A stretch of DNA of 64,000 bases from Rebecca billardiae RCC1528. Taxonomy: Eukaryota > Protista > Haptophyta. The position numbers were made by a program, and so were the translations under genes. Position 1 is the stretch's first letter, and the number at the start of each line of letters is the position of its first letter. Shown here piece after piece: positions 34,564 through 53,783 of the stretch. The stretch covers positions 1,240,001 to 1,304,000 of the forward strand of contig OZ251224.1 in assembly GCA_965240325.2 (NCBI GenBank), given 5' to 3'. Below the pieces are notes generated by a model that worked only from the letters and a program-made list of their open reading frames with translations, had not been told where the DNA came from and made no database searches.

Positions 34564-34837
34564 CTCGGACTTCAACCCGCCGCGAGCCCCGTGACGCCGT
34601 CCGCAACGATGCGGCCGCGTAGAGCGCAGCAGTGGAAAAGCCCGTTGGCCACGCCTCCAGCAGCAGGCCGGCCGAGGGATTGCGCGCCCGCCCTCGGTCG
34701 GAGCCCAGGACCGCGCGGACGATGATGAGAAAAAACGACGACTAAAAAAGGCGTGGCGTTCGTGAGTCCGATTTGCCCTAATAGTTTGTTATTTGGCGCT
34801 TGTCCGGCCGGGGCGGCCCTCAGCCGCGCGGATTCCC

Positions 34838-37800
34838 ATGGCGGGCGGCGTGAGTGCGCCGTCGACGCCTGCAAGAGCGGATGAGCCGCCATCGGCCAGG
34901 CCGGGCCCGTTGACCCGGCTGGCGTCCGTCGGCTCGATCATCGATGGGTCGAGCAAGGCCAACCGGAAGTACGGGCGCATGCCGTCGGAGGGGGACCTGG
35001 GCAATGCCCAGTCAGTCGCGGAGCACGTGCGCGCCGTGAACCGCATCGCATCGGTGTGGCGTGCCTTCCTCGCATGCCGTCGGGTGGAGGCGATACTCTT
35101 GGAGAGCTACCAGCCGCGCAACTTTCACCTCAAGGGTTCTGACGAGTCGGCCGACTTTGGCTTGATCGCGTTCGAGTCCCACGCCTCGCGCGAGGCCGCG
35201 CCGTACATACGCGTATCGGACGAGAGCAAGATCGACAAGGTCGTGGGCTTGGTGCGCACGGCGTGGGATGTGCGCGACGCGCAGGTCGTGATCTCGCTGA
35301 CCGGTGGCGCGCAGGACCTGAAGCTCAAGCCGCACGTGCACGACGTCTTCAACCGCGGCCTGGTGCGCGCCGCGCAGCAGACAAACGCGTGGATCGTGAC
35401 GGGCGGCACGGACACGGGCGTGATGAAGCTGGTGGGCGAGGCGCTGCGCGACTACCAGGCGGACGTGCCGTGCATCGGCGTGACGACGTGGGGCGTGGTC
35501 CACGGCCGCGAGCAGCTCGCGAACAACCGTGGCAAGGAGCAGTTCTACCGGCCGATCAAGGTGAACGACGGCTCGGGCGCCGGGCTCGAGCCCAACCACA
35601 CGCACTTCCTGCTCGTGGACACGGGCAAGGAGGGCCAGCGCGCGTGGGGCGGCGAGATCAAGTTCCGCACGGACTTCGAGCAGCACTACTGCCAGCGGTA
35701 CAAGGTGCCGATGGTGCTCGTCGTCGTCGGCGGCAGCTTCGGCACGCTGCAGACGATCGAGCGCGCCGCGGAGAACGAGGTGCCGATCGTGCTCATCTCC
35801 GACTCGGGCGGCGCGCCCGCGACGCTCAGCACGTACATGAAGCTCGGCCGGCTCGAGCTCGACCCGTCGGGGGAGCGCGGGCTCAAGCCGCCCAAGTCGG
35901 ACGAGGAGCGCGCCAAGCTCGAGGCGCAGGTGCAGCGCATCCTCAGCCTGCACGAGAAGCACAAGGTGCTCACCTCGTTCACGACGCGGCAGGGCGAGAC
36001 GCGCAACCTCGACCTGGTGCTGCTCAAGGCGATGCTCTTCGACACGGAGGGCGGGCTGCGGCAGACGAACCTGAAGGAGTCGAAGAAGATGCTGCACCTC
36101 GCGATCGACTGGGGGCGCATCGAGGTCGTCTCGCAGTGGATCGAGAAGAGCGCGGCGATGTACGCGAGCCTCGTCGTGCCCGCCGGCTCGCCGATGAAGT
36201 CGCCCGCGCCCGCCGTGCGCGAGCGGCACGCGTTCGAGCTGCAGCGCCACGCCTCGTCCACGCGCCGCATGTACGACGCGGCGCTGCACACGAAGCAGCA
36301 GCTGGGCAACGAGCTGCAGCAGGCGCTGCAGGAGGCGCTGTACATCGCGCTCAAGCACCGCAAGGCGCCCATCGTCGACCTGCTCCTCAAGGCCAACCTG
36401 CAGGCGGCAGACGTGCCGCTGCTCAACCTGTACCACGACACGCTCGAGACGCTGCACATCTTCGAGGCGGACCTGCAGACGATGCGGATCGCGCTGACGC
36501 GCTGGGCGGAGGCGGACGCGGACACGAACTGGGAGAGGCTGCGCAAGGAGCTCGCGGCGTCCGCGCCCGGCTTCAAGCTCTCGCCGCAGGCGGTGCTCGC
36601 GAAGCTCGGCCGCCACTTCAGCGGGTCGAGCGGCATGAACGGCGTGGCGTCGGGCGCCGCCGCGGCCGCGCCCACGCCCTCGGGCTCGCTTCGCAAGGTG
36701 CAGCTCCCGGCCGATCACGACGTCGGCGCGGACGGCGCCTCGCGGAAGGCCTCGCTCGAGCCGATCGACGCGGCCGAGCGCAAAGGCAGCGTCTTCCGCG
36801 CGCGCGCTCGCGCGAGCCGCCACCAGGCGCGCGCGCAGGCCCTGTACAGCGAGGTTGTGATCCCATGGCTCACGAGCACGTGCCAGCTCGAGCCGCTGGA
36901 CGAGCTGTGGCGCGCGCAGCTGCTGCGCGCGTGGACGGTGGACGACGTGATGTACTGGGCGGTGCTGATGGCGGACGAGGCGCTCGTGCGCGTGCTGTGG
37001 ACGCACGTCGACGAGCCCATCCGGATGGCGCTCGCCGCGAGCAACATGACGTCCAAGCTCGCCAGCCTCGCGCGCTTTGACCGGCAGCGCTTCCTCGATC
37101 TCGCGCACACGTACGAGCGCTGGGCGACGGGCGTGCTTGACCAGGCGACGAACGAGCTCGAGGCGCGCTGGCTGCTGCAGCAGCCGTTCAACACGTGGGT
37201 GCGCGGGCGGACGGACGGCACGCTGGTCACCGCGGCGATCCGCACGCAGCGCAAGGCCTTCCTCGCGCACGCGCACACGCAGTCGCTGCTCGACGCGTGG
37301 TGGCGCGGCGACATTGTCGCGCACTTTGAGCCCGCGCTCGGCCGGGGCAAGTACTGCCTCTCGTCGAGAGAGCCGCACGCGCTGCTCGTGCTCGCGCACG
37401 CGCTGAGCTTCGCGCTGCTGCCGCTCGTCGAGATGGAGCCGACGCTCGCGGCGAAGCACTCGGTGCACATCGAGCGCTCGCGCCGCTCGCTCGAGGGCCG
37501 CAAGACTCAGCTGGGGCGCCGGCCGACGCGGCTCGAGCGCGGCGGCAAGGCGGAGGCGTCGGCGTTCATGTTCCGCCAGCTGCAGTTCGCCGAGGGGATG
37601 GCGGGCGGCTGGCGGCACATGGCCCTCGACTTCTACTCCGCGCCGAAGACCAAGTTCTGGCTGCGCGTCTCGAGCTACGTCGTGTTCCTCGTCCTGTACG
37701 CGACCGTGCTGCTGATGGACGACGGCACGCCCGACGTGTCCGGCTGCGAGGCGGTGTTCAGCGTGTGGGTGTTCGGGCTCGCGGTGGACGAGCTCTTCCA

Positions 37801-39559
37801 GTTCGTGACCAACCGCCGGCTGCACCGCTCGCACTTCGAGGACATCTGGAACTACCTCGACTTCGCGATGCTCTTCCTCGTGTTCCCGATCGTCTGGCTG
37901 CTGCGGATGGTCGCGCTCGCGACGTGCTGCAGCACGCCCTCGCGCGCCATCGAGCTCGACGGCGGCGGGATCTCGCTCGAGCCGGGCGGCGACTGCGTGT
38001 GCATGCTGCTCTCGCGCGCGCGCACGATGCTCGCCGCCAACGCGGTGCTCAGCTTCTTCCGCTTCCTCGCCAACTTCAAGGTGCACCCGCGGCTGGGCGT
38101 GCTGATCCACGTGATCACCGAGATCCAGAAGGACGTGGGCGTCTTCTTCGCCATCCTCTTCTTCGTCGTGATGGGCTTCGCGTTCGCGTTCTCGGGGCTG
38201 GCGCCGCCGCGCCGCTTCTACGTGCACGGCGACTCGTCGAGCCCGCTGCTCATCCCGATCTGGAACCTCTTCGACCTGAGCGACGTGTCGGACGTGACGC
38301 AGGAGTCGGAGTCGCCCGTGCTCGGCATGACGCTGCTCGCCACGTACCTCTTCCTCTCGCAGATCCTGCTCGTCAACCTGCTGATCGCGATGATGAACAC
38401 GTCGTACGCGGAGGCGCACAAGAACGCGGAGCAGGAGTGGGCGTCGTCGCGCGCGTCGAGCATCGAGGAGCTGCTCGTGCTCTCGCCGCTGCCGCCGCCG
38501 ATCTCGGCGCCGTGGCTGCTGTACGAGCTCGTGCGCTCGACGCGGCCGCCGCTCCCGCGGATCACGCGGCGCGCCTCGTCGAGCGCCTCTGAGCACGGCT
38601 CGAGGCACGCCGTCAAGAAGCGGCGGAACATCAAGCTGCTGCACGAGTACCTCGAGCAGCGCCTCTCGACAGAGAACGAGTCGGTCGAGTCGCGCGTGCG
38701 CGTGCTGCGCGACGAGATCGACCGGCTGACAAACATGGTGGAGACGGCGAGCGCTGACCGCGCAGAGTCCAAGTCGATCCTCGACAAGCTCCTCACCGAG
38801 CGCGCCGAGACCACCGAGGCGGTGGCGAAGCTCGAGCGCACGCTGGAGCAGCTGGCGGGGCTGGTCGAGGGCATGCCGCAGCGCGCGCCCGCGGGGGCCG
38901 CGCACAGGCCGCCGCCGCGCCCGCCGCCGAGCGCGGTGCCGAGCCAAGCCGCAGAGCCGCGCATCGCCGTCTCGCCGCCGACCATCGACAGCGCCGGCCG
39001 CGCGCGCCGCCCAAGCAGATTGCGCCGACCGCTCGGGCCGAGCCCCCTGCCGGACCTCGAGCTGGAGAGCATCGGGCCCGGCGAGCCGGCCGTGCCCGCG
39101 CACCCTGAGCAGGACGCTGCGACCGCGCCCCCGCACGAGCGGGTGGCGGCGGCGACCCGGCCGAGCGCGGCCGCGCAGCGCTGTCACAGCGCGCAGAGCG
39201 CGCCACTCGAGGGCCAAGCCGCGGCGCCACCGGCCGAGCGGGCGGCAGAGGGGGCGTCGGTGACCGGAGCGAGCGCCGACGGCAGACTCGACGTGCCAGT
39301 GACGCTGTACGCGCCGCGAGCGGGCGCGACATCCGCGTCGGCGCGGCTGGACAAGCTCGCGGCACAGCGCGAGCGCATCGCTGCGGCAGCGGCGAACGGC
39401 CAGCGGCTCGCACAAGCTGCGAGGCGGTCACCCGCGGCCCCGTTACCGCCGCCAGGAGCCGAGGCGACCGCAGCTGGTGCGCCCCGCAATGGTAGTGCTG
39501 CTGACCCTCCCCCGGAAAGGAGCAGCAGCATTGTCCGCGATGACGTGTTGCTCATGTGA
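34838..39559 (+). CDS. TRPM-like cation channel with SLOG (MHR1/2) domain, paralog 1
   Basis: ISLTGGA, AWIVTGGTDTGVMKLVGEA, LEPNHTHFLLVD, FYSAPKTKFW, six TM segments, ILLVNLLIAMMNTSY, a TRP-box W, LPPPIS and a coiled coil. IQ-like RIASVWRAFLACRR near the N-terminus. No NUDT9-H domain seen. Confidence 0.92.
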   Translation: MAGGVSAPSTPARADEPPSARPGPLTRLASVGSIIDGSSKANRKYGRMPSEGDLGNAQSVAEHVRAVNRIASVWRAFLACRRVEAILLESYQPRNFHLKGSDESADFGLIAFESHASREAAPYIRVSDESKIDKVVGLVRTAWDVRDAQVVISLTGGAQDLKLKPHVHDVFNRGLVRAAQQTNAWIVTGGTDTGVMKLVGEALRDYQADVPCIGVTTWGVVHGREQLANNRGKEQFYRPIKVNDGSGAGLEPNHTHFLLVDTGKEGQRAWGGEIKFRTDFEQHYCQRYKVPMVLVVVGGSFGTLQTIERAAENEVPIVLISDSGGAPATLSTYMKLGRLELDPSGERGLKPPKSDEERAKLEAQVQRILSLHEKHKVLTSFTTRQGETRNLDLVLLKAMLFDTEGGLRQTNLKESKKMLHLAIDWGRIEVVSQWIEKSAAMYASLVVPAGSPMKSPAPAVRERHAFELQRHASSTRRMYDAALHTKQQLGNELQQALQEALYIALKHRKAPIVDLLLKANLQAADVPLLNLYHDTLETLHIFEADLQTMRIALTRWAEADADTNWERLRKELAASAPGFKLSPQAVLAKLGRHFSGSSGMNGVASGAAAAAPTPSGSLRKVQLPADHDVGADGASRKASLEPIDAAERKGSVFRARARASRHQARAQALYSEVVIPWLTSTCQLEPLDELWRAQLLRAWTVDDVMYWAVLMADEALVRVLWTHVDEPIRMALAASNMTSKLASLARFDRQRFLDLAHTYERWATGVLDQATNELEARWLLQQPFNTWVRGRTDGTLVTAAIRTQRKAFLAHAHTQSLLDAWWRGDIVAHFEPALGRGKYCLSSREPHALLVLAHALSFALLPLVEMEPTLAAKHSVHIERSRRSLEGRKTQLGRRPTRLERGGKAEASAFMFRQLQFAEGMAGGWRHMALDFYSAPKTKFWLRVSSYVVFLVLYATVLLMDDGTPDVSGCEAVFSVWVFGLAVDELFQFVTNRRLHRSHFEDIWNYLDFAMLFLVFPIVWLLRMVALATCCSTPSRAIELDGGGISLEPGGDCVCMLLSRARTMLAANAVLSFFRFLANFKVHPRLGVLIHVITEIQKDVGVFFAILFFVVMGFAFAFSGLAPPRRFYVHGDSSSPLLIPIWNLFDLSDVSDVTQESESPVLGMTLLATYLFLSQILLVNLLIAMMNTSYAEAHKNAEQEWASSRASSIEELLVLSPLPPPISAPWLLYELVRSTRPPLPRITRRASSSASEHGSRHAVKKRRNIKLLHEYLEQRLSTENESVESRVRVLRDEIDRLTNMVETASADRAESKSILDKLLTERAETTEAVAKLERTLEQLAGLVEGMPQRAPAGAAHRPPPRPPPSAVPSQAAEPRIAVSPPTIDSAGRARRPSRLRRPLGPSPLPDLELESIGPGEPAVPAHPEQDAATAPPHERVAAATRPSAAAQRCHSAQSAPLEGQAAAPPAERAAEGASVTGASADGRLDVPVTLYAPRAGATSASARLDKLAAQRERIAAAAANGQRLAQAARRSPAAPLPPPGAEATAAGAPRNGSAADPPPERSSSIVRDDVLLM

Positions 39560-41779: not shown

Positions 41780-44089
41780 TCAGGCATCGTCGTCCTCGAC
41801 CTCATCAGGACCGGTATTGAACAGAAGGCAGCCCAGGCCGACGGCTTCTGCGTCTCGGTGTAAGCGCGCGAGCGCGTGAGCATAGAGCACACGGTCCTCT
41901 GTGAGCCGATCTTGGAGACGCACCGAGGCGGCGTGTCGGTCTGCAGCGCCCTCGATGAGTGTCTCAGCGACGCGTTCGCTCACAGCGGCGGCCAGCACGG
42001 GTCCCGCTTGCTCGCCATGCCCGGGCTGGGCTGCGATCCCGCTCCCGGCCGCGTCGTGCGCCTCGCTCCCGTTGCGCACCGGCCACGCCGAGCCCAGAGA
42101 TGAGCTCGTGCCCTGGCGCACCCTGGCGAGAGAGGTGTTGGAGCACACGCAGTCGGCCGGCAGGCCAACAGGCACAGCCATGCGCGCGAGAGCCACACAC
42201 ACCGATGCGCGCAGCTGCTCAACAACGCCCACGACGAACGCACCGTCCACAGCCGCAAGCGCCGCGCCGAGTGCTCGAGTAGCAGCGCCCTCGACCGCAC
42301 CGGCTTCACCCGGCGCGTCCGTGGCTGCGTCGCCCACGTGCAGCACCTGCGGGGAGCGGGGCGCGCGATGGCACTGCCAGGGCGGGACCGGCAGCGGCAG
42401 CGAGCGGAGCGCGCGCCGGCCCCGAGCGGAGGCGTCGCGGGGCCGCAGTAGCCACTGGCTGAGCGACGGCCAGCGGCGCTTGCGCACGAGCTCCCGGCAG
42501 GCCGCGTGCACGTCGAGCAAGTAGCCCGCGGGCTCGTGCAGCAGCAGGAGGAGCCGCAGCCCCGGCAGGCCCGCCAGCCCGAGGGCGTCTGCCGCGTGCG
42601 CGAGTGGCTCCGTGCTCGACGCGAGGTTGCACCCCGTGGGCAGCGCCACTGCGCCGAGCGAGCGGTTCGCGCCCACGCCCACCGCCCCGGCCTGCGCGCG
42701 GTCGCACGCCGTCCACAGCTCGGGCGAGGCGTATGCGCCCAGCTGCTCGAGGAAGCGCGCGGCCGCGGCGCCCCCGGCGGGCATGAGCGCGAGGAGGTGG
42801 AAGTTGGAGGCGGCAGCAGACGCGGCGGCTTGGGCCGTGCGCGGCGCGACGAAGAACTCGGGCAGCGTGCGGCGCAGGGTGGCGCGGTACGCGAGGGCGC
42901 CGCCGCACAGGTGCCTGATGTGCGCGAGCACGGCCAGGCTCGCGTTCAGCCCGAGCGTCCGCTCCCCGCCCATCATGAAGTGCACTGCCATGGCGCTCGC
43001 GCGCGCGGGCTGGAAGACCACCTTGCCCTTGAGCGAGTGGTGGCGCGGCCGGGGCTGCAGGGGCCCGCAGGGCAGCCCGTGCCGCTCGGCCGCGACCACG
43101 TGGTAGTCGGTGAGCTGGAACGCCACCGCGTCCGGGTGCGCGCCGAGCTGCGCCTCGAGGAGCTCGGCCAAGCCGTCGCGCGGCAGCGTGCCCGCGCCGC
43201 CCGGCGCAGGGCCTGACAGCTTCACGTACTCGTCCACGTCGCACGAGAGCAGCCAGCGCGCGTGGCCTCGGGTGGCGTACAACGAGTGCATGCCGTGGAG
43301 GTGCTGGTCGACGAACGGCTGCCGCCGCCCAAACCAGAACGGCACGATCAGCGCGCCGCGCGGCTCGTATCGCTCGCGCAGCGCGCGCACGTAAGACGTG
43401 TTGAGCGCCGCGCGGTCGTTCACGTACACGAGGGCGCGCTCGACGCCCAGGTGGGTGTGGTACGCCAGCCAGTGCCGGAGCGGGTCGGCCGCGTGCTCGA
43501 GCGTCGGTTGGTTCACGTACAACGCCGCCACGAGCCGCAGCGGGCGCGCGTGCCCGCCGAGCAGCGGCGCGTGCAGCGGCGCAGGCCCGAGGGCGATGGT
43601 CTTGCGCGCGCCCGCGTACTCAAGGCTGAGGTTGGCGCCGCGGCACGGTGGCTCGCCGCAGTCGGCGATGTGAATGCCGCTGTGGAAAAGGACGTGGCTC
43701 ATATTCGTCGGGCGGGTGACTACGCCGTCCGCGCAGCGCGCCTCCGGCGGCACAGGCGTGCAGCGCGCGTCAGCTGCATCAGCTCCGCTGCTCGGTGGAC
43801 GGAAGGCGCACGTCCACGGACCTGCGGGCAGCCGGTGCCCCCTCGGCAGCCCCGTGCCTGGCTCGGCGCTTGCATTCTCAGGTGGCAGACTGCGCACCAT
43901 GCAGATGGTCGCGTTGCGCGAGCTGATGAGGCAGTCGATGAGCTCCGGTCCGTCTGACGGCTCCTGGGATGTGTGATAGGGCGTCACCGCCGTCGTGCAC
44001 TCGTGATACCCGACTTCGGCAGGGAGGATCGGCAGGCAGAGCGCTGTGAGGAGCGCTATCCCAACCGGCGCGTGTCGGCGTGGCCCCAT
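41780..44089 (-). CDS. Secretory-pathway GT92/DUF23-like glycosyltransferase fused to a sulfotransferase-like domain
   Basis: N-terminal signal or anchor. WLAYHTHLGVERALVYVND and WLLSCDVDEYV (DxD) are GT-A motifs. C-terminal LLLHEP, FVVGVVEQLRASVCV and DRVLYAHALARL resemble Golgi sulfotransferases. Confidence 0.65.
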   Translation of the reverse strand: MGPRRHAPVGIALLTALCLPILPAEVGYHECTTAVTPYHTSQEPSDGPELIDCLISSRNATICMVRSLPPENASAEPGTGLPRGHRLPAGPWTCAFRPPSSGADAADARCTPVPPEARCADGVVTRPTNMSHVLFHSGIHIADCGEPPCRGANLSLEYAGARKTIALGPAPLHAPLLGGHARPLRLVAALYVNQPTLEHAADPLRHWLAYHTHLGVERALVYVNDRAALNTSYVRALRERYEPRGALIVPFWFGRRQPFVDQHLHGMHSLYATRGHARWLLSCDVDEYVKLSGPAPGGAGTLPRDGLAELLEAQLGAHPDAVAFQLTDYHVVAAERHGLPCGPLQPRPRHHSLKGKVVFQPARASAMAVHFMMGGERTLGLNASLAVLAHIRHLCGGALAYRATLRRTLPEFFVAPRTAQAAASAAASNFHLLALMPAGGAAAARFLEQLGAYASPELWTACDRAQAGAVGVGANRSLGAVALPTGCNLASSTEPLAHAADALGLAGLPGLRLLLLLHEPAGYLLDVHAACRELVRKRRWPSLSQWLLRPRDASARGRRALRSLPLPVPPWQCHRAPRSPQVLHVGDAATDAPGEAGAVEGAATRALGAALAAVDGAFVVGVVEQLRASVCVALARMAVPVGLPADCVCSNTSLARVRQGTSSSLGSAWPVRNGSEAHDAAGSGIAAQPGHGEQAGPVLAAAVSERVAETLIEGAADRHAASVRLQDRLTEDRVLYAHALARLHRDAEAVGLGCLLFNTGPDEVEDDDA

Positions 44090-45189: not shown

Positions 45190-48100
45190 TCAGAAGCCCT
45201 TGAGCCGCTTGATCAGGTCGTTCGCCTCCTCTTGCACGTTCTCGTCGGACGCGTGCTCGCGCTTGGCGCGCTCGGCCGCCGTGCGCGCGCCGAGCTCGAC
45301 CGCCCGCCGCTTGAGGCTGTCGGAGCCCGCCACCATGTTGTAGACGGCGATGCACGCCTTCTGCTGCAGCAGCGCCTCCTTGGGATGCTTCTCCATCGCG
45401 CGCAGGATCGCCTGGAGCGCGCCCGCGTCCGCCGCCTTCTGCCCGCGCCCGGAGTCGAGCCCGTAGCACTGGCAGGCGACGACCTGGCTCGCCAGCCTCT
45501 GCAGGTTGGCCTCGTCCGGGAAGGCGTCCATGGCGGCCACGGCGGCGCGCAGCACGCCCGCCTCCTCGCCCTGCTTGTTGCGCGCGAGCGCGGCGTCGTC
45601 CTTGCCACCGAGCAAGTTGATGAGCGAGTCGCACCCGTCAGAGAGCACGTCCTTGTGCTTCGCGCTCGCGGTCATCGCGGCGACGACCGCGGAGATCGCG
45701 CCCGCCTCCGCGGCCTGCTGCTTGCGCGTGAGCGCGGCGGCCGTCGTGCCCCTGCACACGTTGGCGAGCGCCTGGCACGCCTTCTGGTGCACGCTCTTGT
45801 CCGCGGGGTGCGCGTTGATGGCGCTCACGACCGGCGGCAGCACGCCCGCCTCGGCCGCGGCCTGCTTGCGCGGGTCGCTGCTGTGGCAGATGTTGTGCAG
45901 CGCGCTGCACGCCTTGGCCTGCACCTCCGCGTGCTTGGCGTACGTCTTCATCGCGTGCACCAGCGCGTGCAGCGCGCCCGCGTCCACCGCGGGCTGCTCG
46001 GAGCCGTCCGGCCTCGTCTTGCCGATGAGCACGTCGAGCGCGCGCACGGCCGCGCCCGCGTTGATTGAGCTCTCGCTGGCGGCCGCCGAGTCGATGGCGG
46101 CGACGAGGCCCTTGAAGTCGAGCTTCTCGAGCTGCTCCTTCGTCAGCGCGGCGGTCGGGCCCGCGCCCGCGCCCGCGGCCGCGCCCGCGGCCGCGCGCGT
46201 GCCCGCGTCCGGGCCCAGCCGCTTCTGCAGCAGATCGTCCGCCTCCGCCTTCACCTTCTCGTCGCTCGGGTGCTCGCGCTTGGCGCGCTCCGCCGCGGCG
46301 CGCGCGCCCGCGTCGATCGCCTGCTGCTGGATCGCGCGCGCGGTGTCGTTCGTGCCCGAGCAGATGTTGTACAGCCCGATGCATGCCTCGATCTGGATCT
46401 TGGCGCTCTTCACGTGCGAGTCCATCGCGCGGACGAACGCCTTGACCGCGCCCGCGTCCGCCGCCGCCTTCTTGCGCGTGCCCGGGCCGAGGCAGACGGA
46501 CTGCAGCACCTTGCACCCGGTGAGCTGCATCTCCTCGAAGCCGGAGTGCTGGTCCATCGAGCGGATCACGGCGGGCAGCACGCCCTCGTCCACCGCCTGC
46601 TGCTTGCGCTTGTACCCCGCCTCGTCCTTGCCGTACATCACGTTGTACAGCGCGTTGCACGCCTTGGCCTGCGCGTTGGAGGACTTGGCGTGCCGCTCCA
46701 TCGCCTTCACGATGGCGCGCACGGCGCCCGCGTCGGCCGCGGGCTGCTCCGAGCCGGCCTGCTTGGTGCGTACGCCCACCTCGAACATCGCGGTGGACAC
46801 CGCGTCGGCATCCGGCGCGTTCTCCACGGCGGCGATCAGCCCCTTCCAGTCCAGCGCCTTGAGCTGCTCCTTGGTGAGCGCGACCGCCGGCTTCACGCCC
46901 AGCCTGTTCTTCAGCAGGTCGTCCGCCTCGGCCTTCACCTTCTCGTCGCTCGGGTGCTCGCGCTTGGCGCGCTCCGCCGCGGCGACGGCGCCCGCGTCCT
47001 TCGCCTGCTTCTGCACCGCGACCATCCCGGTGCAGATGTTGTACAGCGCGATGCACGCCTCCTTCTGCAGCTCGGCGCTCTTCGGGTGCTTGTCCATCGC
47101 GCGGACCACCGCCTTGACCGCGCCCGCGTCCGCCGCCGCCTGCTTGCGCGTGCCCGGGCCGAGGCAGACGGACTTGACGAGGCTGCACCCCTTGAGCTGC
47201 ATCTCCTGGTGGTCGGCGTGCGCCTCCATCGCGCGCATCACGATGGGCAGCACACCCTGGTCCACCGCCTGCTGCTTGCGCTTGTACCCCGCCTCGTCCT
47301 TGCCGTAGATCACGTTGATCATCGCGTTGGTCGCCTTGGCCTGCGTGCTCGCGGCCTTGGCATGCTTCTCGAGCGCCTTGATGATGGCGCGCACGGCGCC
47401 GGCGTCGGCCGCGGGCTGCTCCGTCCCGGCCTGCTTGGTGCGCACGGCCACCTCGACGACCGCGCGCTCGGCCGACTCCGCGTCCGGCGCGTTCTCCACG
47501 GCGGCCACCAGCCCCTTCCAGTCCAGCGCCTTGAGCTGCTCCTTGCTCAGCCCGCCGCCCGCCGCGCCCGTCGCCGCGCCCGTCGCCGGCGCGGCAGGGG
47601 CGGGCGTCGCCGGCGCGGCAGGGGCGGGCGACGCGGGCGGCGGCTTCGCAGGCGGCGTGCTCGGCGGCTTCGCGGGCGGCGTGCTCGGCGGCGTGCCGCC
47701 GCCCTCGCCCGCGCCCTGCACGAGCTCCGCCGGCACGCCCGTCTGCTCGAAGTCCTTGATCTTCTGCAGCAGGCGGCGCTGCCGAGGCTTCGAGTCGAGG
47801 CCCCAGCCGGCGAGGTCGTCAAGCTCGACGAAGGCCAAGTCCTCGCCGACGAAGCGCGACTTGCGCGCCATCGGCGCGATGTCCCCAAAGCTGAGTGCCT
47901 CGAGCAGCGCGCACACGCCCTCCACGTCGAGCGAGGCGAGGGGCACCACGCCCTTCGGCTTGGCAGCAGCGTTGGGAGCGCCGTCGCCGCCTTTGCCGCC
48001 GTCCTTCCCGCCGCGCGCGCCCGACTTTGGCGACTCGGGCCCCGTGTGGCTCACGGGCGTGGGCGCGCTTGGCGCGTGCGTCTCGCGCTGCACCATCCCG

Positions 48101-48729
48101 CCCACGAGCTTCACGAGCCCCAGCGCGTCCTCGTACGGCCGGTCGAACAGGCTCACGTCCTGCGGCGGGATGCTGTTCAGACCGCTGAAGTCTTGCAGCG
48201 CGTCGCGCCGGATGAGCTCGTACTTGTTGCGCTCGCGCGTGCTCGCGTTGGGCTTGAGCAGCTCGTCGAGCGGCCACTGCTCAGTCTTCTTTGGCGGCAT
48301 CGCGGGGTCGACGCGCACGGGCACGATGTCCACGCCGCGCTTGAGGGCGGCATGGATCTCGAGCAGGCACGGCAACGACCTGAAGAGCGCGCGCGTGAGC
48401 AGCACGACGAGCACCTTGGCTGTCGAGCGGTCACCATCGATGCGAAGCAGGAAGATGCGCCAGTCCTCACCCGGTGGGAGCATCAGCCCCGAGATGCACG
48501 GCAGCCCTGAGCTGAAGAAGAGCGAGATGAGGTCTCGCGCACGCCAGACGCCCGGGCCCGTGCCGTGCTCGTCTTGTTCGCGCTTGCCCGTCGCATACGA
48601 GAAGGCGATCTCCGGGTAGAAGTCGTCAAAGTTGTCCGTGGGCACCAGCGCCTGCAGCTCATTCTGCAGCTGCAGCACCGCGTCCTTTGTCGTCCGCTCG
48701 GGCGGCTCGCTCACCCACGAGGCCGACAT
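45190..48729 (-). CDS. TIR - SAM - armadillo-repeat protein (SARM1-like domains, reversed order)
   Basis: TIR-like: IAFSYA...GEDW...AKVLVVLLTRALFRSLPCLLEIHAALKRGVDIVPV. SAM: LDVEGVCALLEALSF...FVGEDLAFVELDDLAGWGLDSKPRQRRLLQKI. Then a Pro/Ala linker and three ARM modules (AGAVRAIIKALEKH...QAKACNALYN). Confidence 0.8.
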   Translation of the reverse strand: MSASWVSEPPERTTKDAVLQLQNELQALVPTDNFDDFYPEIAFSYATGKREQDEHGTGPGVWRARDLISLFFSSGLPCISGLMLPPGEDWRIFLLRIDGDRSTAKVLVVLLTRALFRSLPCLLEIHAALKRGVDIVPVRVDPAMPPKKTEQWPLDELLKPNASTRERNKYELIRRDALQDFSGLNSIPPQDVSLFDRPYEDALGLVKLVGGMVQRETHAPSAPTPVSHTGPESPKSGARGGKDGGKGGDGAPNAAAKPKGVVPLASLDVEGVCALLEALSFGDIAPMARKSRFVGEDLAFVELDDLAGWGLDSKPRQRRLLQKIKDFEQTGVPAELVQGAGEGGGTPPSTPPAKPPSTPPAKPPPASPAPAAPATPAPAAPATGAATGAAGGGLSKEQLKALDWKGLVAAVENAPDAESAERAVVEVAVRTKQAGTEQPAADAGAVRAIIKALEKHAKAASTQAKATNAMINVIYGKDEAGYKRKQQAVDQGVLPIVMRAMEAHADHQEMQLKGCSLVKSVCLGPGTRKQAAADAGAVKAVVRAMDKHPKSAELQKEACIALYNICTGMVAVQKQAKDAGAVAAAERAKREHPSDEKVKAEADDLLKNRLGVKPAVALTKEQLKALDWKGLIAAVENAPDADAVSTAMFEVGVRTKQAGSEQPAADAGAVRAIVKAMERHAKSSNAQAKACNALYNVMYGKDEAGYKRKQQAVDEGVLPAVIRSMDQHSGFEEMQLTGCKVLQSVCLGPGTRKKAAADAGAVKAFVRAMDSHVKSAKIQIEACIGLYNICSGTNDTARAIQQQAIDAGARAAAERAKREHPSDEKVKAEADDLLQKRLGPDAGTRAAAGAAAGAGAGPTAALTKEQLEKLDFKGLVAAIDSAAASESSINAGAAVRALDVLIGKTRPDGSEQPAVDAGALHALVHAMKTYAKHAEVQAKACSALHNICHSSDPRKQAAAEAGVLPPVVSAINAHPADKSVHQKACQALANVCRGTTAAALTRKQQAAEAGAISAVVAAMTASAKHKDVLSDGCDSLINLLGGKDDAALARNKQGEEAGVLRAAVAAMDAFPDEANLQRLASQVVACQCYGLDSGRGQKAADAGALQAILRAMEKHPKEALLQQKACIAVYNMVAGSDSLKRRAVELGARTAAERAKREHASDENVQEEANDLIKRLKGF

Positions 48730-48962
48730 GATGAGCCCCGACGATAGCCGAGCGCCCCCGGCCGCCGGGTCCAGCAGGCAAGCGCAGGAGTGGTTACACA
48801 GTCGTTACGTGACACCGCGGGTAAATGTCTCTACTGTATGTAAGATTTACTATGACGAACTAATCTCTAAATCATGTTCATCATTTTGGTCCAAAACTAA
48901 TATCCGGTATTCAAGGCTCGCTGAAAAGCCGCCGAGCACCCGCCCGCGGGTCGAGAACTCGA
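48730..48962. promoter_or_regulatory. Putative bidirectional promoter between the TIR-SAM-ARM and TRPM-like genes
   Basis: 233-bp head-to-head gap with an AT-rich core at ~48800-48915. Confidence 0.55.
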
Positions 48963-51900
48963 ATGGCGGGCGAACCGGCGCCGGGCGACGGTGCCACGCG
49001 CTCGCCGCCCGAGGCCGCGGATGGGGGCCAGTATGCGCGCAGGGCGTCGCGCAGGCCGACCCTGACGTTCCGGCGCCCCTCGACCGCGGACGGGTACAGC
49101 GCACTCGACCCGTCCAAAGTGAGGCGCCGGCTGTCCCTCCTGCCGGCGCTCGCGATGCAGCGCAAGCAGCGCCAGTCGATCCGGCAGGTGGAGCACGCGG
49201 CCCTCGTCGTCTTCGCGGCGCAGAAGATCTGGCGGTACTGGACGATGCTGCGCGAGCGGCGCACCGAGTCCTGCAAGCCCGACCAGTTCTCACGGTACGA
49301 CGGCGTCGGCACGGCCGACTACGGCTCGATCGTGTTTGAGAAGCACGGCGTGCGCGAGCCCGCGCGGTACATCCGGCTGTGGACGAAGGACACGAGCGAC
49401 ATCGACCGGGTGGTCGGTCTGGTGACGAACGTGTGGGCCGTCCCGCGCGCGCGCGTCGTGATCTCGCTCACCGGCGGCGCGCAGGACCTCAACCTGAAGC
49501 CGCACGTTCACGACGTGATCAACCGCGGGCTGGTGCGCGCCGCGCAGCTCACGCACGCGTGGATCGTGACGGGCGGCACGGACACGGGCGTGATGAAGCT
49601 GGTGGGCGACGCGGTCCGCGACTACCAGGCCAACGTGCCGTGCATCGGCGTCGGGACGTGGGGCGTCACGTACGGGCGCGAGCAGCTCTCGAACAACCGC
49701 GGCGGCGAGCGCTTCTACCGCAAGCTGCGCCGCTCGGACAAGTCGGGCGCGCCGCTGCAGCCGAGCCACACGCACTTCTTGCTCCTGGACTCAGGGCACG
49801 AGGGCAAGGACGCGTGGGGCGGCGAGATCGACTTCCGCATGGAGTTCGAGAAGCGATACTGCGAGCGGTACGGCGTGCCCACCGTGCACGTCGCGATCGG
49901 CGGCGGCGCGGGCACGCTGCGCACCATCAAGGTGGCGGTGCAGACGGGGGTGCCGACGGTGCTCATCACGGACTCGGGCGGCGCGCCCGCCGTGATCGCG
50001 CACTACATGCGCACGGAGGAGCTCGCCGTCGACCCCCGCGGTGAGCGCGGCTTCAAGCCGCCGCCCGACGTCGCGCGCTCGGCGAGCAAGCTGGGCGAGT
50101 GGAAGGAGCAGATGCGCGCGCAGGTGGCAGAGATTGTCGAGCTGAACAAGCACAAGCGCGTGCTCACCGCCTTCTCCGCGCGGCTCGGCGCGGACGTGCA
50201 CTCCAACCTCGACCTGGTGCTGCTCAACGCGATGCTCTTCGACACGGAGGGCAACCTGCGCCAGCACGACGTGCACGAGTCGAAGCAGATGCTGCAGCTC
50301 GCCATCGAGTGGGGGCGCAAGGAGGTCGTGCAGGCGTGGATGGAGAAGAGCCCCACGCTCACCGTCGGCCGCACGTCGGTCGCGCAGCCCGGCCGCGCCG
50401 AGGCGGCGGCGCAGCCGCGCAAGCAGCGCCTGTCGCACGGCGCCGAGCCCGGCGGCACCGCCGGGATGGCCGTCGAGGAGGCGCTGCGCGAGGGCCTGCT
50501 CCTCGCGCTCACGACGTACAAGGCGGACATCGTCGACCTGCTGCTCGGGCAGAACGTGAAGGCGGCCGAGATCGACCTGCTCCAGCTGTGGCACGGCACG
50601 GACATGCGCAACTTCGACGTGCCGATCGAGCAGCTCGAGCGCGGGATGCGGCTGTGGGAGCAGGAGACGCTCGGCGCCACCGCGAAGAAGGTCGACGAGG
50701 CACTGTACGCGCTCTCGTTCCACGCTGGCGGCGGCGCGGCCGGGCGGCGAGCCGGCGGCGGCTGGCTCGGCTGGCTCAGCACGGCCTTTGGGCTGGGCGG
50801 CAGCGGCGGCTCGGCCGAGAGGGGCGGGGATGGGAGCAGCGCCTCCGAGGGCGCGGCGGCGGCGCATCCCGCCGCGCCCTCCCGGCTGAGCACCGAGGAC
50901 CCCGCTGCGGGCTTCGCGAAGAACGGCGGCGCGAACGGCGGCGGCGCGCCGACCGTGGGCGACGTGAGCGCGATGCACGCGGAGCGGCGGCAGCGGCGCA
51001 AGCTCGAGCTGTACCGCAAGTACGTGGTGCCCTTCATCGCGCACACGTTCGACATGCGCGAGCTCAGCGCGCTCTGGCTGCGCCCGAGTACGCGCAGCTG
51101 GCGCGTGCAGGACCTCTTCTACTGGGCGGTGTGCGACCCGCTCGCGGGCGAGCGGCTCGTGCACGTGCTCTGGTGCCACGTCGACGAGCCGATCCGCTCG
51201 GCGCTCGTCGCCAGCCACATGTCGTCCGTGCTCGCGCGGCTCGCGCGGTTCGGCGCGAAGAAGCACGAGGTGCTCGCGCACACGTACGAGTCGTGGGCCG
51301 TCGGCGTGCTCGACCAGTGCCAGAACGAGATCGAGGCGCGCTGGCTGCTGCAGAGACAGTTTGACGAGTGGCCGGCCGAGCGGCGCGGCGGCACGCTCAT
51401 GTCGTTCGCCGTGCGCCGCTCGCGCAAGGCGTTCGTCGCGCACGCGCACGCGCAGGCGACGCTCGACGCGTGGTGGCGCGGCGACATCGTCGAGCGCTTC
51501 GATGCGGAGCGCGGCTTCGGCTCGCGCTGCCTGCTCGACATCGACCCGCCGTTTGTGCGTGTGCTGCTGCACGCCGCCACCTTCACGCTGCTCGGGCTCA
51601 TCGAGATGCAGCCGACGCTCGCCGCCAAGTACCACCACGCGCGCCGGGAGCAGCTCGCGGGCGGGCCGGCCTCGCCCCTCTCGCCGCTGCGCCGCGGCAA
51701 GGGCCCGGTCCACCGCAGCGCCACGCAGCACTGGCACAACATCTTCCTGCTCGACACGTGGCGCGACATCGATCCGCCCAAGGTGGGCTGGTGGGCCGAG
51801 TTCCGCGACTTTTACGCCGCGCCCAAGACGAAGTTTGTGCTGCGCACCACGATGTACGTGTGCTTCCTCGCGCTGTACGCGGCCGTGCTCGTGGGCGACG

Positions 51901-53783
51901 ACGGCAAGCCCGACCTCACGTACATGGAGCTCGGCTTCTACGTGTGGGCGCTCTCACACGCGGTGGACGAGGCGCAGCAGCTCGCAGTCAACCTCGACCA
52001 CGACGAGCAGCACTTTGGCGACGAGGGCTGGAACGTGATCGACGCGATCATGTTCTGGGCGCTCTTCCCGATCGCGATCGCGCTGCGCGTGGCCGCGCGC
52101 GTCACGTGCTGCGCGCAGCCGCAGCGCTCGATCGAGCACGACCCGCTCGGCCACTCGCTCGCCACCGAGTGTACGTGCGAGCCCGCGGCGCTCGCGCGCC
52201 TCATCCTCGCGGTGAACGCGGTGCTCTGCTTCGTGCGCTTCCTCGCCAACTACCGCGTGCACAAGCGGCTGGGCGTGCTGATCCACGTGATCTTCACGAT
52301 GCTCTCGGACGTGCAGGTGTTCGTGTACATCCTCTCCGTCGTCGTCTGCGGCTTCGCGCTCGCGTTCGGCGGGATCGCGCCGCCGCGCATGCTGCGTCTG
52401 CACGGCGACGCGTCGAGCCCGTTCCTCATCCCGATCTGGTCCGCGTTCGACCTGCCCGACATCGACCAGCTCACCGAGCCCGAGCACTCGGAGGCGCCGT
52501 TCCTCGGGATGGCGCTGCTCGCCGTCTATCTCTTCGTCGCGCAGATCCTGCTGGTCAACCTGCTGATCGCGATGATGAACTCGTCGTACGCCAAGGCGCA
52601 GCACTCGAGCGAGGAGGAGTGGGCGGCGTCGCGCGCGACCAGCGTGATGGAGCTGCGCATGCTGCTGCCGTGCCCGCCGCCCTTCTCGCTGCCGTACCTC
52701 GGCCTCCTGCTGCTCGCGCAGCTCGGGCGCAACTGCCTCGCGCGCTGCGGCCTCGCCGAGCGGCTGCGCTCGCGCCCGCAGCGCGCGCGGCTCGGCAGCC
52801 TGATCGACGCGGACGACACGGGCGAGCGCAAGAGGCGCTACTTCAAGTTCCTGCACGACTTCCTCGAGGAGCAGCAGCGGCGGCACACCTCGAGCATCGA
52901 CCAGCGGATGATCGCGCTGCGCGAGGACGTCGACCGGCTCGCGTCGATGCTCGAGACCGCCGCGGCCGACCGCGCCGACTCCAAGGTGCTCATCGACCGC
53001 GTGGACGCGCGGCTGGAGGCGAGCCTGCCGGCGGCGGCGCTGCAGACGGCGCGCTCGAGCATGGCGGCGCGCGCGTCCACCGCCGCGCTCGGCGCGTCGG
53101 AGCGCGGCCAGCAGGCGCTCTTCGAGCGAAGGGTGGCCAGCCCGGGCAGCTCGCCGCTGCCCGCCGGTCGGTTGGAGTCCGATCCGGCCGCCTCGCCCGC
53201 GGAGGCGGCCCTCGCGTCGCGCGTGCGCGCCCTCGAGGCTCGCGAGGCCGAGCTGCTGGCTCAGCTCGACACGGCGCGGCAGCAAGCGGCGGAGGCGACG
53301 GGTGCGCCGCGCGGCCAGCCAGCCATCTCGCTTGATGAGCGGCTGGCCGCCATCGCCTCGCCAGCCGGCTCTTCGCGCTCGGGCTCGTCGCTGAGCCAAC
53401 GGCCGGCGCGCCCGGGCCCGCCGCCGCACGCCACGCCCCTCTCCGCGGCTCTGTCCGGCGACGCGGATGGCGCGCCGTCTCCTGCGCGCAACAACTCGCG
53501 ACCGCGCACGGCGCCGCGCCCTGCAGGCGACGCGCGCGAGCCGCTGTGGCGAGAGCTGCCCGCCGTGGGCACGAGCAGCCGCTCCGACCACAGGCCCAAC
53601 CGTGCGCCGCCAGCATCCTCCCGCTCGCCGCCGCCCGACGCCAGAGGCCCGCCGAGCGCGAGACGCGAGGGGGCGCTTCGGCCTGCCCAGCCGCCTCGCC
53701 GGCCCGCGGCACGGCCGGGCGACCGCGACGTGCCGCCACGGCCGGGGCAAGGACGCCCATCGTACGGCGACAACTACCTGTAA
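48963..53783 (+). CDS. TRPM-like cation channel with SLOG (MHR1/2) domain, paralog 2
   Basis: Same motif set as paralog 1: ISLTGGAQDL, AWIVTGGTDTGVMKLVG, HTHFLLLD, FYAAPKTKF, ILLVNLLIAMMNSSY and PPPFS. IQ-like AAQKIWRYW. Confidence 0.92.
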   Translation: MAGEPAPGDGATRSPPEAADGGQYARRASRRPTLTFRRPSTADGYSALDPSKVRRRLSLLPALAMQRKQRQSIRQVEHAALVVFAAQKIWRYWTMLRERRTESCKPDQFSRYDGVGTADYGSIVFEKHGVREPARYIRLWTKDTSDIDRVVGLVTNVWAVPRARVVISLTGGAQDLNLKPHVHDVINRGLVRAAQLTHAWIVTGGTDTGVMKLVGDAVRDYQANVPCIGVGTWGVTYGREQLSNNRGGERFYRKLRRSDKSGAPLQPSHTHFLLLDSGHEGKDAWGGEIDFRMEFEKRYCERYGVPTVHVAIGGGAGTLRTIKVAVQTGVPTVLITDSGGAPAVIAHYMRTEELAVDPRGERGFKPPPDVARSASKLGEWKEQMRAQVAEIVELNKHKRVLTAFSARLGADVHSNLDLVLLNAMLFDTEGNLRQHDVHESKQMLQLAIEWGRKEVVQAWMEKSPTLTVGRTSVAQPGRAEAAAQPRKQRLSHGAEPGGTAGMAVEEALREGLLLALTTYKADIVDLLLGQNVKAAEIDLLQLWHGTDMRNFDVPIEQLERGMRLWEQETLGATAKKVDEALYALSFHAGGGAAGRRAGGGWLGWLSTAFGLGGSGGSAERGGDGSSASEGAAAAHPAAPSRLSTEDPAAGFAKNGGANGGGAPTVGDVSAMHAERRQRRKLELYRKYVVPFIAHTFDMRELSALWLRPSTRSWRVQDLFYWAVCDPLAGERLVHVLWCHVDEPIRSALVASHMSSVLARLARFGAKKHEVLAHTYESWAVGVLDQCQNEIEARWLLQRQFDEWPAERRGGTLMSFAVRRSRKAFVAHAHAQATLDAWWRGDIVERFDAERGFGSRCLLDIDPPFVRVLLHAATFTLLGLIEMQPTLAAKYHHARREQLAGGPASPLSPLRRGKGPVHRSATQHWHNIFLLDTWRDIDPPKVGWWAEFRDFYAAPKTKFVLRTTMYVCFLALYAAVLVGDDGKPDLTYMELGFYVWALSHAVDEAQQLAVNLDHDEQHFGDEGWNVIDAIMFWALFPIAIALRVAARVTCCAQPQRSIEHDPLGHSLATECTCEPAALARLILAVNAVLCFVRFLANYRVHKRLGVLIHVIFTMLSDVQVFVYILSVVVCGFALAFGGIAPPRMLRLHGDASSPFLIPIWSAFDLPDIDQLTEPEHSEAPFLGMALLAVYLFVAQILLVNLLIAMMNSSYAKAQHSSEEEWAASRATSVMELRMLLPCPPPFSLPYLGLLLLAQLGRNCLARCGLAERLRSRPQRARLGSLIDADDTGERKRRYFKFLHDFLEEQQRRHTSSIDQRMIALREDVDRLASMLETAAADRADSKVLIDRVDARLEASLPAAALQTARSSMAARASTAALGASERGQQALFERRVASPGSSPLPAGRLESDPAASPAEAALASRVRALEAREAELLAQLDTARQQAAEATGAPRGQPAISLDERLAAIASPAGSSRSGSSLSQRPARPGPPPHATPLSAALSGDADGAPSPARNNSRPRTAPRPAGDAREPLWRELPAVGTSSRSDHRPNRAPPASSRSPPPDARGPPSARREGALRPAQPPRRPAARPGDRDVPPRPGQGRPSYGDNYL

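Follow-up and report, generated by a model that had tools for sequence, protein, structure and literature searches.

Animal SARM1 and Caenorhabditis elegans TIR-1 hold TIR, SAM and ARM domains in one chain and keep a Glu at the TIR's catalytic position. SARM1 is arranged ARM-SAM-SAM-TIR, with its TIR at the C-terminus and its tandem SAM pair in an octameric ring. The SARM1 ARM region senses nicotinamide mononucleotide/NAD+ at an allosteric site. Plant TIR-NLRs (receptors with nucleotide-binding and leucine-rich repeat parts) have an N-terminal TIR, an NB-ARC oligomerizing ATPase and a C-terminal LRR sensor, and in bacterial Thoeris systems the TIR gene adjoins a gene with a SLOG domain. The haptophyte alga Rebecca billardiae RCC1528 encodes a further arrangement. 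The window analyzed here is a stretch of 64,000 nucleotides (NCBI GenBank assembly GCA_965240325.2, contig OZ251224.1, positions 1,240,001 to 1,304,000 of the forward strand). It carries at 45190-48729 (-) a single ATG-started open reading frame (ORF) of 1179 codons with no internal stops, in which a TIR domain, one SAM domain and a long array of ARM repeats all lie in frame.

The best explanation of this gene, to which sequence comparisons and structural models lend about an even chance, is a soluble three-part signaling protein with an NAD+-cleaving TIR, a SAM oligomerizer and an ARM sensor. Lineage-specific domain shuffling would have joined the TIR and SAM to ∼17 ARM repeats with long disordered linkers between them. 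The TIR would cleave NAD+ with E124 as its catalytic residue, and the SAM would gather several chains so that their TIRs form the composite active site required by known TIR enzymes. Binding of a protein or peptide ligand to the C-terminal ARM arrays may set the timing of TIR assembly, and the output would be either NAD+ depletion or an ADP-ribose (ADPR)-type signal. By analogy, the proposed logic of effector, oligomerizer and repeat sensor is that of SARM1 and of plant TIR-NLRs (TIR-NB-ARC-LRR). These predictions of catalysis, SAM self-association, ARM regulation and type of output build on an established ORF, three folds, a conserved Glu, a rare architecture and shuffled paralogues. The initial annotation of this DNA had suggested an autoinhibited, oligomerizing NAD+-cleaving enzyme (NADase), a reasonable mechanism by analogy that may prove right or wrong with roughly equal probability. 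No membrane helix was found by hydropathy, as there is no hydrophobic stretch of 19 residues and the maximum Kyte-Doolittle value is 1.63, in the beta-C strand.

Judged by the Pfam profile TIR_2 (PF13676), the TIR call would be open, because residues 84-146 reach 20-21.6 bits where the cut-off is 28. The assignment nevertheless holds, rescued by a paralogue, by the wider family and by the fold. The paralogue on contig 15 of the host genome scores 28.0 bits, at the cut-off. TIR_2 matches 73 of 96 aligned sequences (94 shorter relatives, this protein and the paralogue) at E ≤ 0.001, and it also matches 29 of 40 longer relatives. An AlphaFold2 (AF2) model of residues 1-345, built on the 96-sequence alignment, has a mean predicted local distance difference test (pLDDT) score of 87, with values >93 over the TIR (residues 11-210). 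Compared by VIA-align, the TIR model matches the human SARM1 TIR (9mw2_A) with Z 14.5 and a root-mean-square deviation (rmsd) of 2.1 Å over 129 of 131 residues. It matches the RUN1 TIR (7s2z) with the same Z of 14.5, followed by RPP1, RPS4, SPARTA and C. elegans TIR-1 at Z 12.5-14.2. Dozens of solved TIR structures match at Z 12-14.5 with 120-164 residues covered, which identifies a flavodoxin-like TIR fold. Foldseek places plant TIR domains at its top ranks (RPS4, E 1.3e-4). Because SARM1 and plant TIRs tie as the best fold match, the model indicates no specific affinity to SARM1. A false-positive reading of the sub-threshold TIR_2 score was considered and rejected on the 28.0 bits of the paralogue, the 73/96 family matches and the folds at Z 14.5. 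The initial annotation named the TIR and SAM correctly, although of these two only the SAM clears its profile cut-off and the TIR relies on paralogue, family and fold. Its coordinates for the TIR (∼48615-48130, residues 39-200) and the SAM (∼47945-47745, residues 262-328) agree with the modeled TIR at residues 36-217 and the Pfam SAM_2 match at residues 268-327, and Pfam profiles and AF2 folds bear out the order TIR-SAM-ARM with one SAM.

Several lines of evidence place the putative catalytic Glu. The sequence SLPCLLEIHAAL spans residues 118-129 (48343-48378 (-)), and the E124 codon at 48358-48360 lies within its SLPCLLEI portion. In the AF2 model, E124 is inside a helix (residues 119-131) that follows a strand (residues 106-111), which is the alpha-C position. 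Residues conserved in at least 90% of the 96-sequence alignment are E124, S118, C121, A128, W90, G81, L82, D53, G58 and G60. The equivalent Ser, Glu and one Trp are invariant among the 40 longer relatives, and S-x-P-C-L-x-E is invariant among the nine closest sequences. Alignment by hhalign of residues 101-141 with a canonical TIR_2 domain from the same genome (L008) is gap-free over 41 columns and sets E124 on the Glu of that domain, with a probability of only 11% and E 0.003. By phmmer, the L008 Glu in turn falls on those of RPS4 ‘WCVRELEK’ and Cat1 ‘WCWDELEQ’, and the RPS4 Glu in the WCVRE motif is the catalytic E88. Alpha-C placement, family conservation and the alignment to RPS4 and Cat1 through L008 all agree with the earlier proposal that the Glu is kept at the canonical TIR catalytic position.

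Near-invariance in this family also extends to D53, G58 and G60 in the AA loop and to G81, L82 and W90 in the BB loop. In SARM1 and RUN1, these two loops and alpha-C make up the NAD+ pocket (PMC7075850). Since near-invariance is concentrated in these pocket elements, an enzyme fits the family better than a pure scaffold. The best matches of the TIR model, the active TIRs of SARM1, RUN1, RPP1 and SPARTA, are likewise consistent with an enzyme. Furthermore, protist TIRs bearing this Glu can make cyclic ADPR (cADPR) isomers (bioRxiv 10.64898/2026.04.20.719644).

The SAM assignment is well founded in both profile and model. Pfam SAM_2 (PF07647) clears its cut-off of 20.5 with 23.7-25.5 bits. The model of residues 261-330 has the five-helix SAM fold and matches the Shank2 SAM with Z 12.2 and an rmsd of 1.1 Å over 70 of 70 residues, SARM1 SAM1-2 with Z 11.8 by VIA-align, and the DGK-delta SAM with a template-modeling (TM) score of 0.86 by Foldseek. 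The SAMs of Shank2, DGK-delta and SARM1 are self-associating, and resemblance to them suggests that the SAM studied here may oligomerize as well.

The ARM region (residues 391-1179) is detected by Pfam Arm (PF00514) with E 5.9e-26 and 90.1 bits against a cut-off of 20.6. It consists of three tandem modules, each closing with an AERAKREH...DL motif. Modules 1 and 2 share 74% identity at the protein level and 85% at the DNA level, which marks a recent internal duplication, and between modules 3 and 1 the identity is 34% over 317 residues. The AF2 model of module 1 (pLDDT 97.6, predicted TM score 0.93) has 15 helices forming five ARM repeats, and the whole region probably holds ∼17. The module 1 model comes closest in fold to designed consensus armadillo proteins and importin-alpha, and its TM scores with designed ARM proteins and Kap60p are 0.73-0.79. 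The module family has 76 matches in the host genome, clustered on contigs 37 and 8. Seven relatives elsewhere (653-1396 residues) carry Peptidase_C14, WW, zf-MYND or no other domain, and 0 of 7 has a TIR or SAM. The fusions in other samples are to caspase-like Peptidase_C14 (P0171), WW (P0170) and zf-MYND (P0173, P0175). The genomic clusters of ARM-module genes lie at contig 37:255225-272267 and contig 8:439955-444364.

The combination of the three domains is rare. A HMMER search with a two-paralogue profile against 1.84 billion representatives gave 390 proteins at E ≤ 0.001, 212 of them at E ≤ 1e-10, and the architecture was inspected in the best 150 of the 390. Local phmmer found the SAM or ARM modules of this protein in 0 of these 150, the TIR part alone matching. 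The Pfam partners of the relatives are Ank, LRR_5, LRR_8, protein kinase, TPR, WD40, MORN, WGR, and pentapeptide and decapeptide repeats, and in fused relatives the TIR is found at either end. A search from a 9-sequence alignment gave 58 metagenomic loci (534 kb) with relatives 37-46% identical, and these loci held no SAM, ARM or TRPM like those described here. No TIR relative was found in IMG/VR. A word-index search with the N-terminal region among proteins of 648-2063 residues gave no match; it also failed to match the protein itself, so its blank result says little. No published description of a TIR-SAM-ARM protein was found either. TIR domains are fused to many partners in the host genome and in the family.

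The TIR family itself is divergent and rich in haptophytes. One relative is from Chrysochromulina parva (EukProt, P0006), and in the ESM Atlas the clusters closest to the protein consist of haptophyte TIR_2 proteins. TIR genes of Gephyrocapsa huxleyi respond to virus infection and are reported without extra domains (PMC12489294). They and the C. parva relative are like this protein in lineage and in the conserved Glu, and they are known from genes and expression rather than biochemistry. The relatives inspected have Ank, LRR_5, kinase, TPR, WD40, MORN, WGR or decapeptide partners, and none of them combines SAM with ARM.

The host genome (72 Mb in 41 contigs, ∼70% GC) suggests where the pieces came from. 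It has two clear members of this TIR subfamily. The second is the contig-15 paralogue (L002, 376-2406 (-), equivalent to contig 15:1012211-1014241), a 676-residue ORF that is 43% identical over 343 residues across TIR and SAM and keeps the Glu. The two TIRs are 52-53% identical, compared with at most 46% for outside relatives. The tail of the paralogue differs, with one RNI-type LRR-like stretch followed by an apparent intron, and the minus-strand ORFs downstream of it gave no Pfam match. Related SAMs occur in a 791-residue SAM-ARM gene on contig 35 (L005:2990-5365 (+)), in a SAM-LRR_6 gene on contig 18 (L007:2837-4597 (-)), and in a 652-residue ORF on contig 15 (L006:2666-4624 (+)) that has no Pfam match, its 340-residue N-terminal part included. 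TIR-SAM, SAM-ARM and SAM-LRR genes in one genome imply lineage-specific shuffling of TIR-SAM and SAM-repeat cassettes. A Pfam search for HET in the host genome found none, but control genomes were equally blank, so the result is uninformative.

Given local shuffling of this kind, the protein counts as a SARM1 analogue rather than an orthologue. Orthology was considered and rejected given the reversed order, the single SAM, the different ARM and the lack of a sequence match. In SARM1 the TIR is C-terminal, whereas here the chain runs TIR (36-217), SAM (261-332), ARM (391-1179), with long disordered linkers and no sequence match to SARM1. The initial annotation had proposed convergent assembly, and this idea has gained from the searches and models, which found an importin-alpha-like ARM, shuffled paralogues in the same genome and, among the sequences of the Protein Data Bank (PDB), no match to SARM1. 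Independent assembly of the SARM1 domain set is therefore supported as the probable origin. Plant TIRs (RPS4, RUN1/RPV1, RPP1, L6/L7) offer another comparison, with VIA-align Z 13.4-14.5, the top Foldseek ranks and the same layout of N-terminal TIR and C-terminal repeat sensor. The motif S-x-x-C-L-x-E is common to both, with the plant form S-x-W-C-L-x-E-L. However, identity is 11-16%, and where plant TIR-NLRs have NB-ARC and LRR, this protein has a SAM in the place of the oligomerizing ATPase, followed by ARM repeats.

A number of observations count against an NAD+-cleaving signaling protein of the SARM1 type. Aside from the sub-cut-off TIR_2 score, no solved TIR was found by sequence at E ≤ 10 when the TIR-SAM region (by phmmer) and the family profile were compared with all PDB sequences; a PDB search with the best relative (P0001) brought up nothing beyond low-complexity noise. 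No orthologue with the full architecture was found in the searches made. There is one SAM instead of a tandem pair, and the ∼17 importin-alpha-like repeats in three modules differ from the SARM1 ARM, no SARM1 chain being among the top 50 fold matches listed for ARM module 1. The Glu by itself is a weak predictor of NADase activity. It is found in >70% of all TIRs, non-enzymatic TLR TIRs included, and the Trp that contacts the ligand in SARM1, four residues upstream of the Glu (PMC7075850), is replaced in the W-x-x-x-E position by Pro120 here and by Pro throughout the family. Moreover, in a 2026 screen only 4 of 29 Glu-bearing TIRs of single-celled eukaryotes other than animals yielded a cyclic ADPR product in E. 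coli (bioRxiv 10.64898/2026.04.20.719644).

These points lend some weight to a non-catalytic scaffold or adaptor, in which TIR and SAM would be homotypic modules as in MyD88-type proteins and the ARM repeats would bind cargo, with no NAD+ chemistry. Such a protein would join the many Glu-retaining eukaryotic TIRs that are not known enzymes (PMC7075850) and the majority of tested protist TIRs that gave no product (bioRxiv 10.64898/2026.04.20.719644), and the ligand-contacting Trp is replaced by Pro. Importin-alpha-type ARM repeats, furthermore, are classical peptide binders. The scaffold is nevertheless judged rather unlikely, as the residues nearly invariant across the family center on pocket elements, namely the Glu with the Ser and Cys before it and the two loops AA and BB, and catalytic TIRs lead the structural matches. 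An artefact of the gene model, with an ORF that merges separate genes, retains introns or is a decaying copy, is very improbable. Sister genes of these families in the host genome continue into non-coding-looking translation, which implies introns in those genes; codon bias cannot judge the low-complexity linkers, and the gene is read from DNA alone. However, the 1179 stop-free codons share one frame, and G+C content at third codon positions (GC3) is 0.86-1.0 across all segments of the ORF. The folded segments each have GC3 0.91-0.99 and second-position values (GC2) of 0.39-0.47, which indicates genuine coding sequence in a genome of ∼70% GC. The paralogue also has TIR and SAM in a single ORF, the C-terminus falls at the natural module end AERAKREH...DL, and introns in place of the linkers would leave the domain order unchanged.

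Should the NAD+-cleaving reading prove right, independent parts would have come together at least twice to give the SARM1 solution of a TIR enzyme with a SAM oligomerizer and an ARM regulator. An active enzyme would also support a general design rule of effector, oligomerizer and repeat sensor shared with plant TIR-NLRs. Among haptophyte-type algae, whose TIR genes are tied to virus resistance so far by expression only (PMC12489294), it would be the first TIR defined as an enzyme.

The gene next door raises the question of whether eukaryotic channels with a SLOG are gated by TIR products. It is a divergent neighbor, with 233 bp and an AT-rich core between its start codon and the start of the TIR-SAM-ARM gene, and by Pfam it encodes a SLOG (LSDAT_euk, 6e-47), a TRPM2 domain and Ion_trans. 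TRPM2 is the ADPR-gated member of the TRPM family. The SLOG region of this channel is closest to human TRPM2 (5e-39, against ∼1e-31 for TRPM3, 4, 7 and 8). A second TRPM2-like channel gene with a SLOG (LSDAT_euk) lies in the window at 34793-39559 (+), and no NUDIX domain was found by Pfam in either channel ORF of the window. BLASTP of the two ORFs gave only weak, low-complexity alignments, even though both have the same Pfam domains, and is uninformative. Between the second channel gene and the TIR-SAM-ARM gene is a 769-residue glycosyltransferase-like ORF (Glyco_tranf_2_4, GT92) at 41780-44089 (-). The host genome has ∼8 such channels and ∼16 TIR_2-detectable genes. One channel on contig 10 (343931-353339; L095:2-1123, L095:3619-5340) continues into a NUDIX ORF (E 3e-9), and ∼2.5 kb past it is a 574-residue ORF with a weak, sub-threshold TIR_2 match of 22.5 bits, from a family of ∼3 close paralogues. 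Six channels outside the window were checked by ORF scan, and no TIR neighbor was found at the flanks of the other five.

A two-gene module would refine the main explanation by naming its output. In this scheme, the TIR would make ADPR or a cADPR isomer, and the SLOG (MHR1/2) of the TRPM2-like channel would read the signal, leading to cation or Ca2+ influx on ARM input. The chain from ARM ligand to SAM-clustered TIR product to channel opening would then be a eukaryotic counterpart of the Thoeris TIR-SLOG pair. It would also parallel animal SARM1/cADPR-calcium signaling. Thoeris ThsB and ThsA resemble this locus in that a TIR gene adjoins a SLOG-domain gene, but the Thoeris SLOG is on a SIR2 or transmembrane effector, and the SLOG here forms the N-terminal part of a TRPM2-like channel. 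Besides the head-to-head arrangement and the affinity of the SLOG to TRPM2, the module is favored by scarcity, with ∼8 channels and two TIR-subfamily members in 72 Mb; counting all ∼16 TIR_2 genes gives a rough post hoc expectation of 0.03 for chance TIR-TRPM pairs within 5 kb. The contig-10 pair of a NUDIX-tailed TRPM and a weak TIR_2-like gene points the same way. Similarly, the clade of the Chlamydomonas 3'cADPR-producing TIR is said to take in TIRs from haptophytes and to have as its sister group bacterial TIRs found in SLOG operons (bioRxiv 10.64898/2026.04.20.719644). Despite these points, the module is quite unlikely. Adjacency is weak evidence in eukaryotes, and the test of it was post hoc. 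Contig 15, which bears the paralogue, is without a TRPM, only contig 10 among the six other channels has a TIR-like gene at its flanks and does so on a sub-threshold score, and the 58 metagenomic loci with TIR relatives lack a TRPM. In the alignment to human TRPM2, Gly stands in place of the ADPR-contacting R358, and R302 and Y295 are kept as Arg and Trp. If the module is true, TIR signaling would be tied directly to ion flux in an alga.

Features of the TIR-SAM-ARM gene and its divergent neighbor, in positions of the window
Feature	Position	Strand	Basis
Whole gene, 1179-residue TIR-SAM-ARM protein	45190..48729	(-)	Stop codon 45190-45192; ATG start; GC3 0.96 overall
N-terminal extension, one helix (residues 15-26)	48625..48729	(-)	AF2 pLDDT >90 from residue 11; aligned in relatives
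TIR domain, residues 36-217	48079..48624	(-)	Fold matches SARM1/RUN1/RPS4; TIR_2 below cut-off; 390 relatives
Codon of E124, putative catalytic Glu in S118-x-P-C121-L-x-E124	48358..48360	(-)	Conservation; alignment to RPS4/Cat1 Glu
Linker 1, residues 218-260, Gly/Lys/Pro/Ala-rich, disordered	47950..48078	(-)	pLDDT <50 for residues 220-251
Single SAM domain, residues 261-332	47734..47949	(-)	SAM_2 profile; Shank2, SARM1 and DGK-delta SAM folds
Linker 2, residues 333-390, Pro/Ala-rich, partly encoded by 24-bp tandem repeats	47560..47733	(-)	Translation; Tandem Repeats Finder arrays 47581-47692
ARM module 1, residues 391-615, five ARM repeats	46885..47559	(-)	AF2 model; designed armadillo/importin-alpha folds
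ARM module 2, residues 616-840, recent tandem copy of module 1	46210..46884	(-)	74% protein / 85% DNA identity
ARM module 3, residues 862-1179, longer, more diverged	45193..46146	(-)	34% identity to module 1; Pfam Arm, ARM_LRRK2 at 914-1151
Divergent intergenic region, 233 bp, AT-rich core, common to TIR-SAM-ARM and channel genes	48730..48962	.	Sequence
Context: head-to-head SLOG-TRPM2-like cation channel gene, outside the protein	48963..53783	(+)	LSDAT_euk 6e-47, TRPM2 domain, Ion_trans

The N-terminal extension with its helix is common to the TIR family. The tandem repeats of the SAM-to-ARM linker have 92-96% matches, and a linker built in this way may differ in length among strains. Elsewhere in the window, a 1424-residue ORF at 20104-24378 (+) encodes a protein-primed DNA_pol_B_2 and an Endonuclease_7 within a lower-GC block at ∼18-34 kb, which fits a Polinton-like element.

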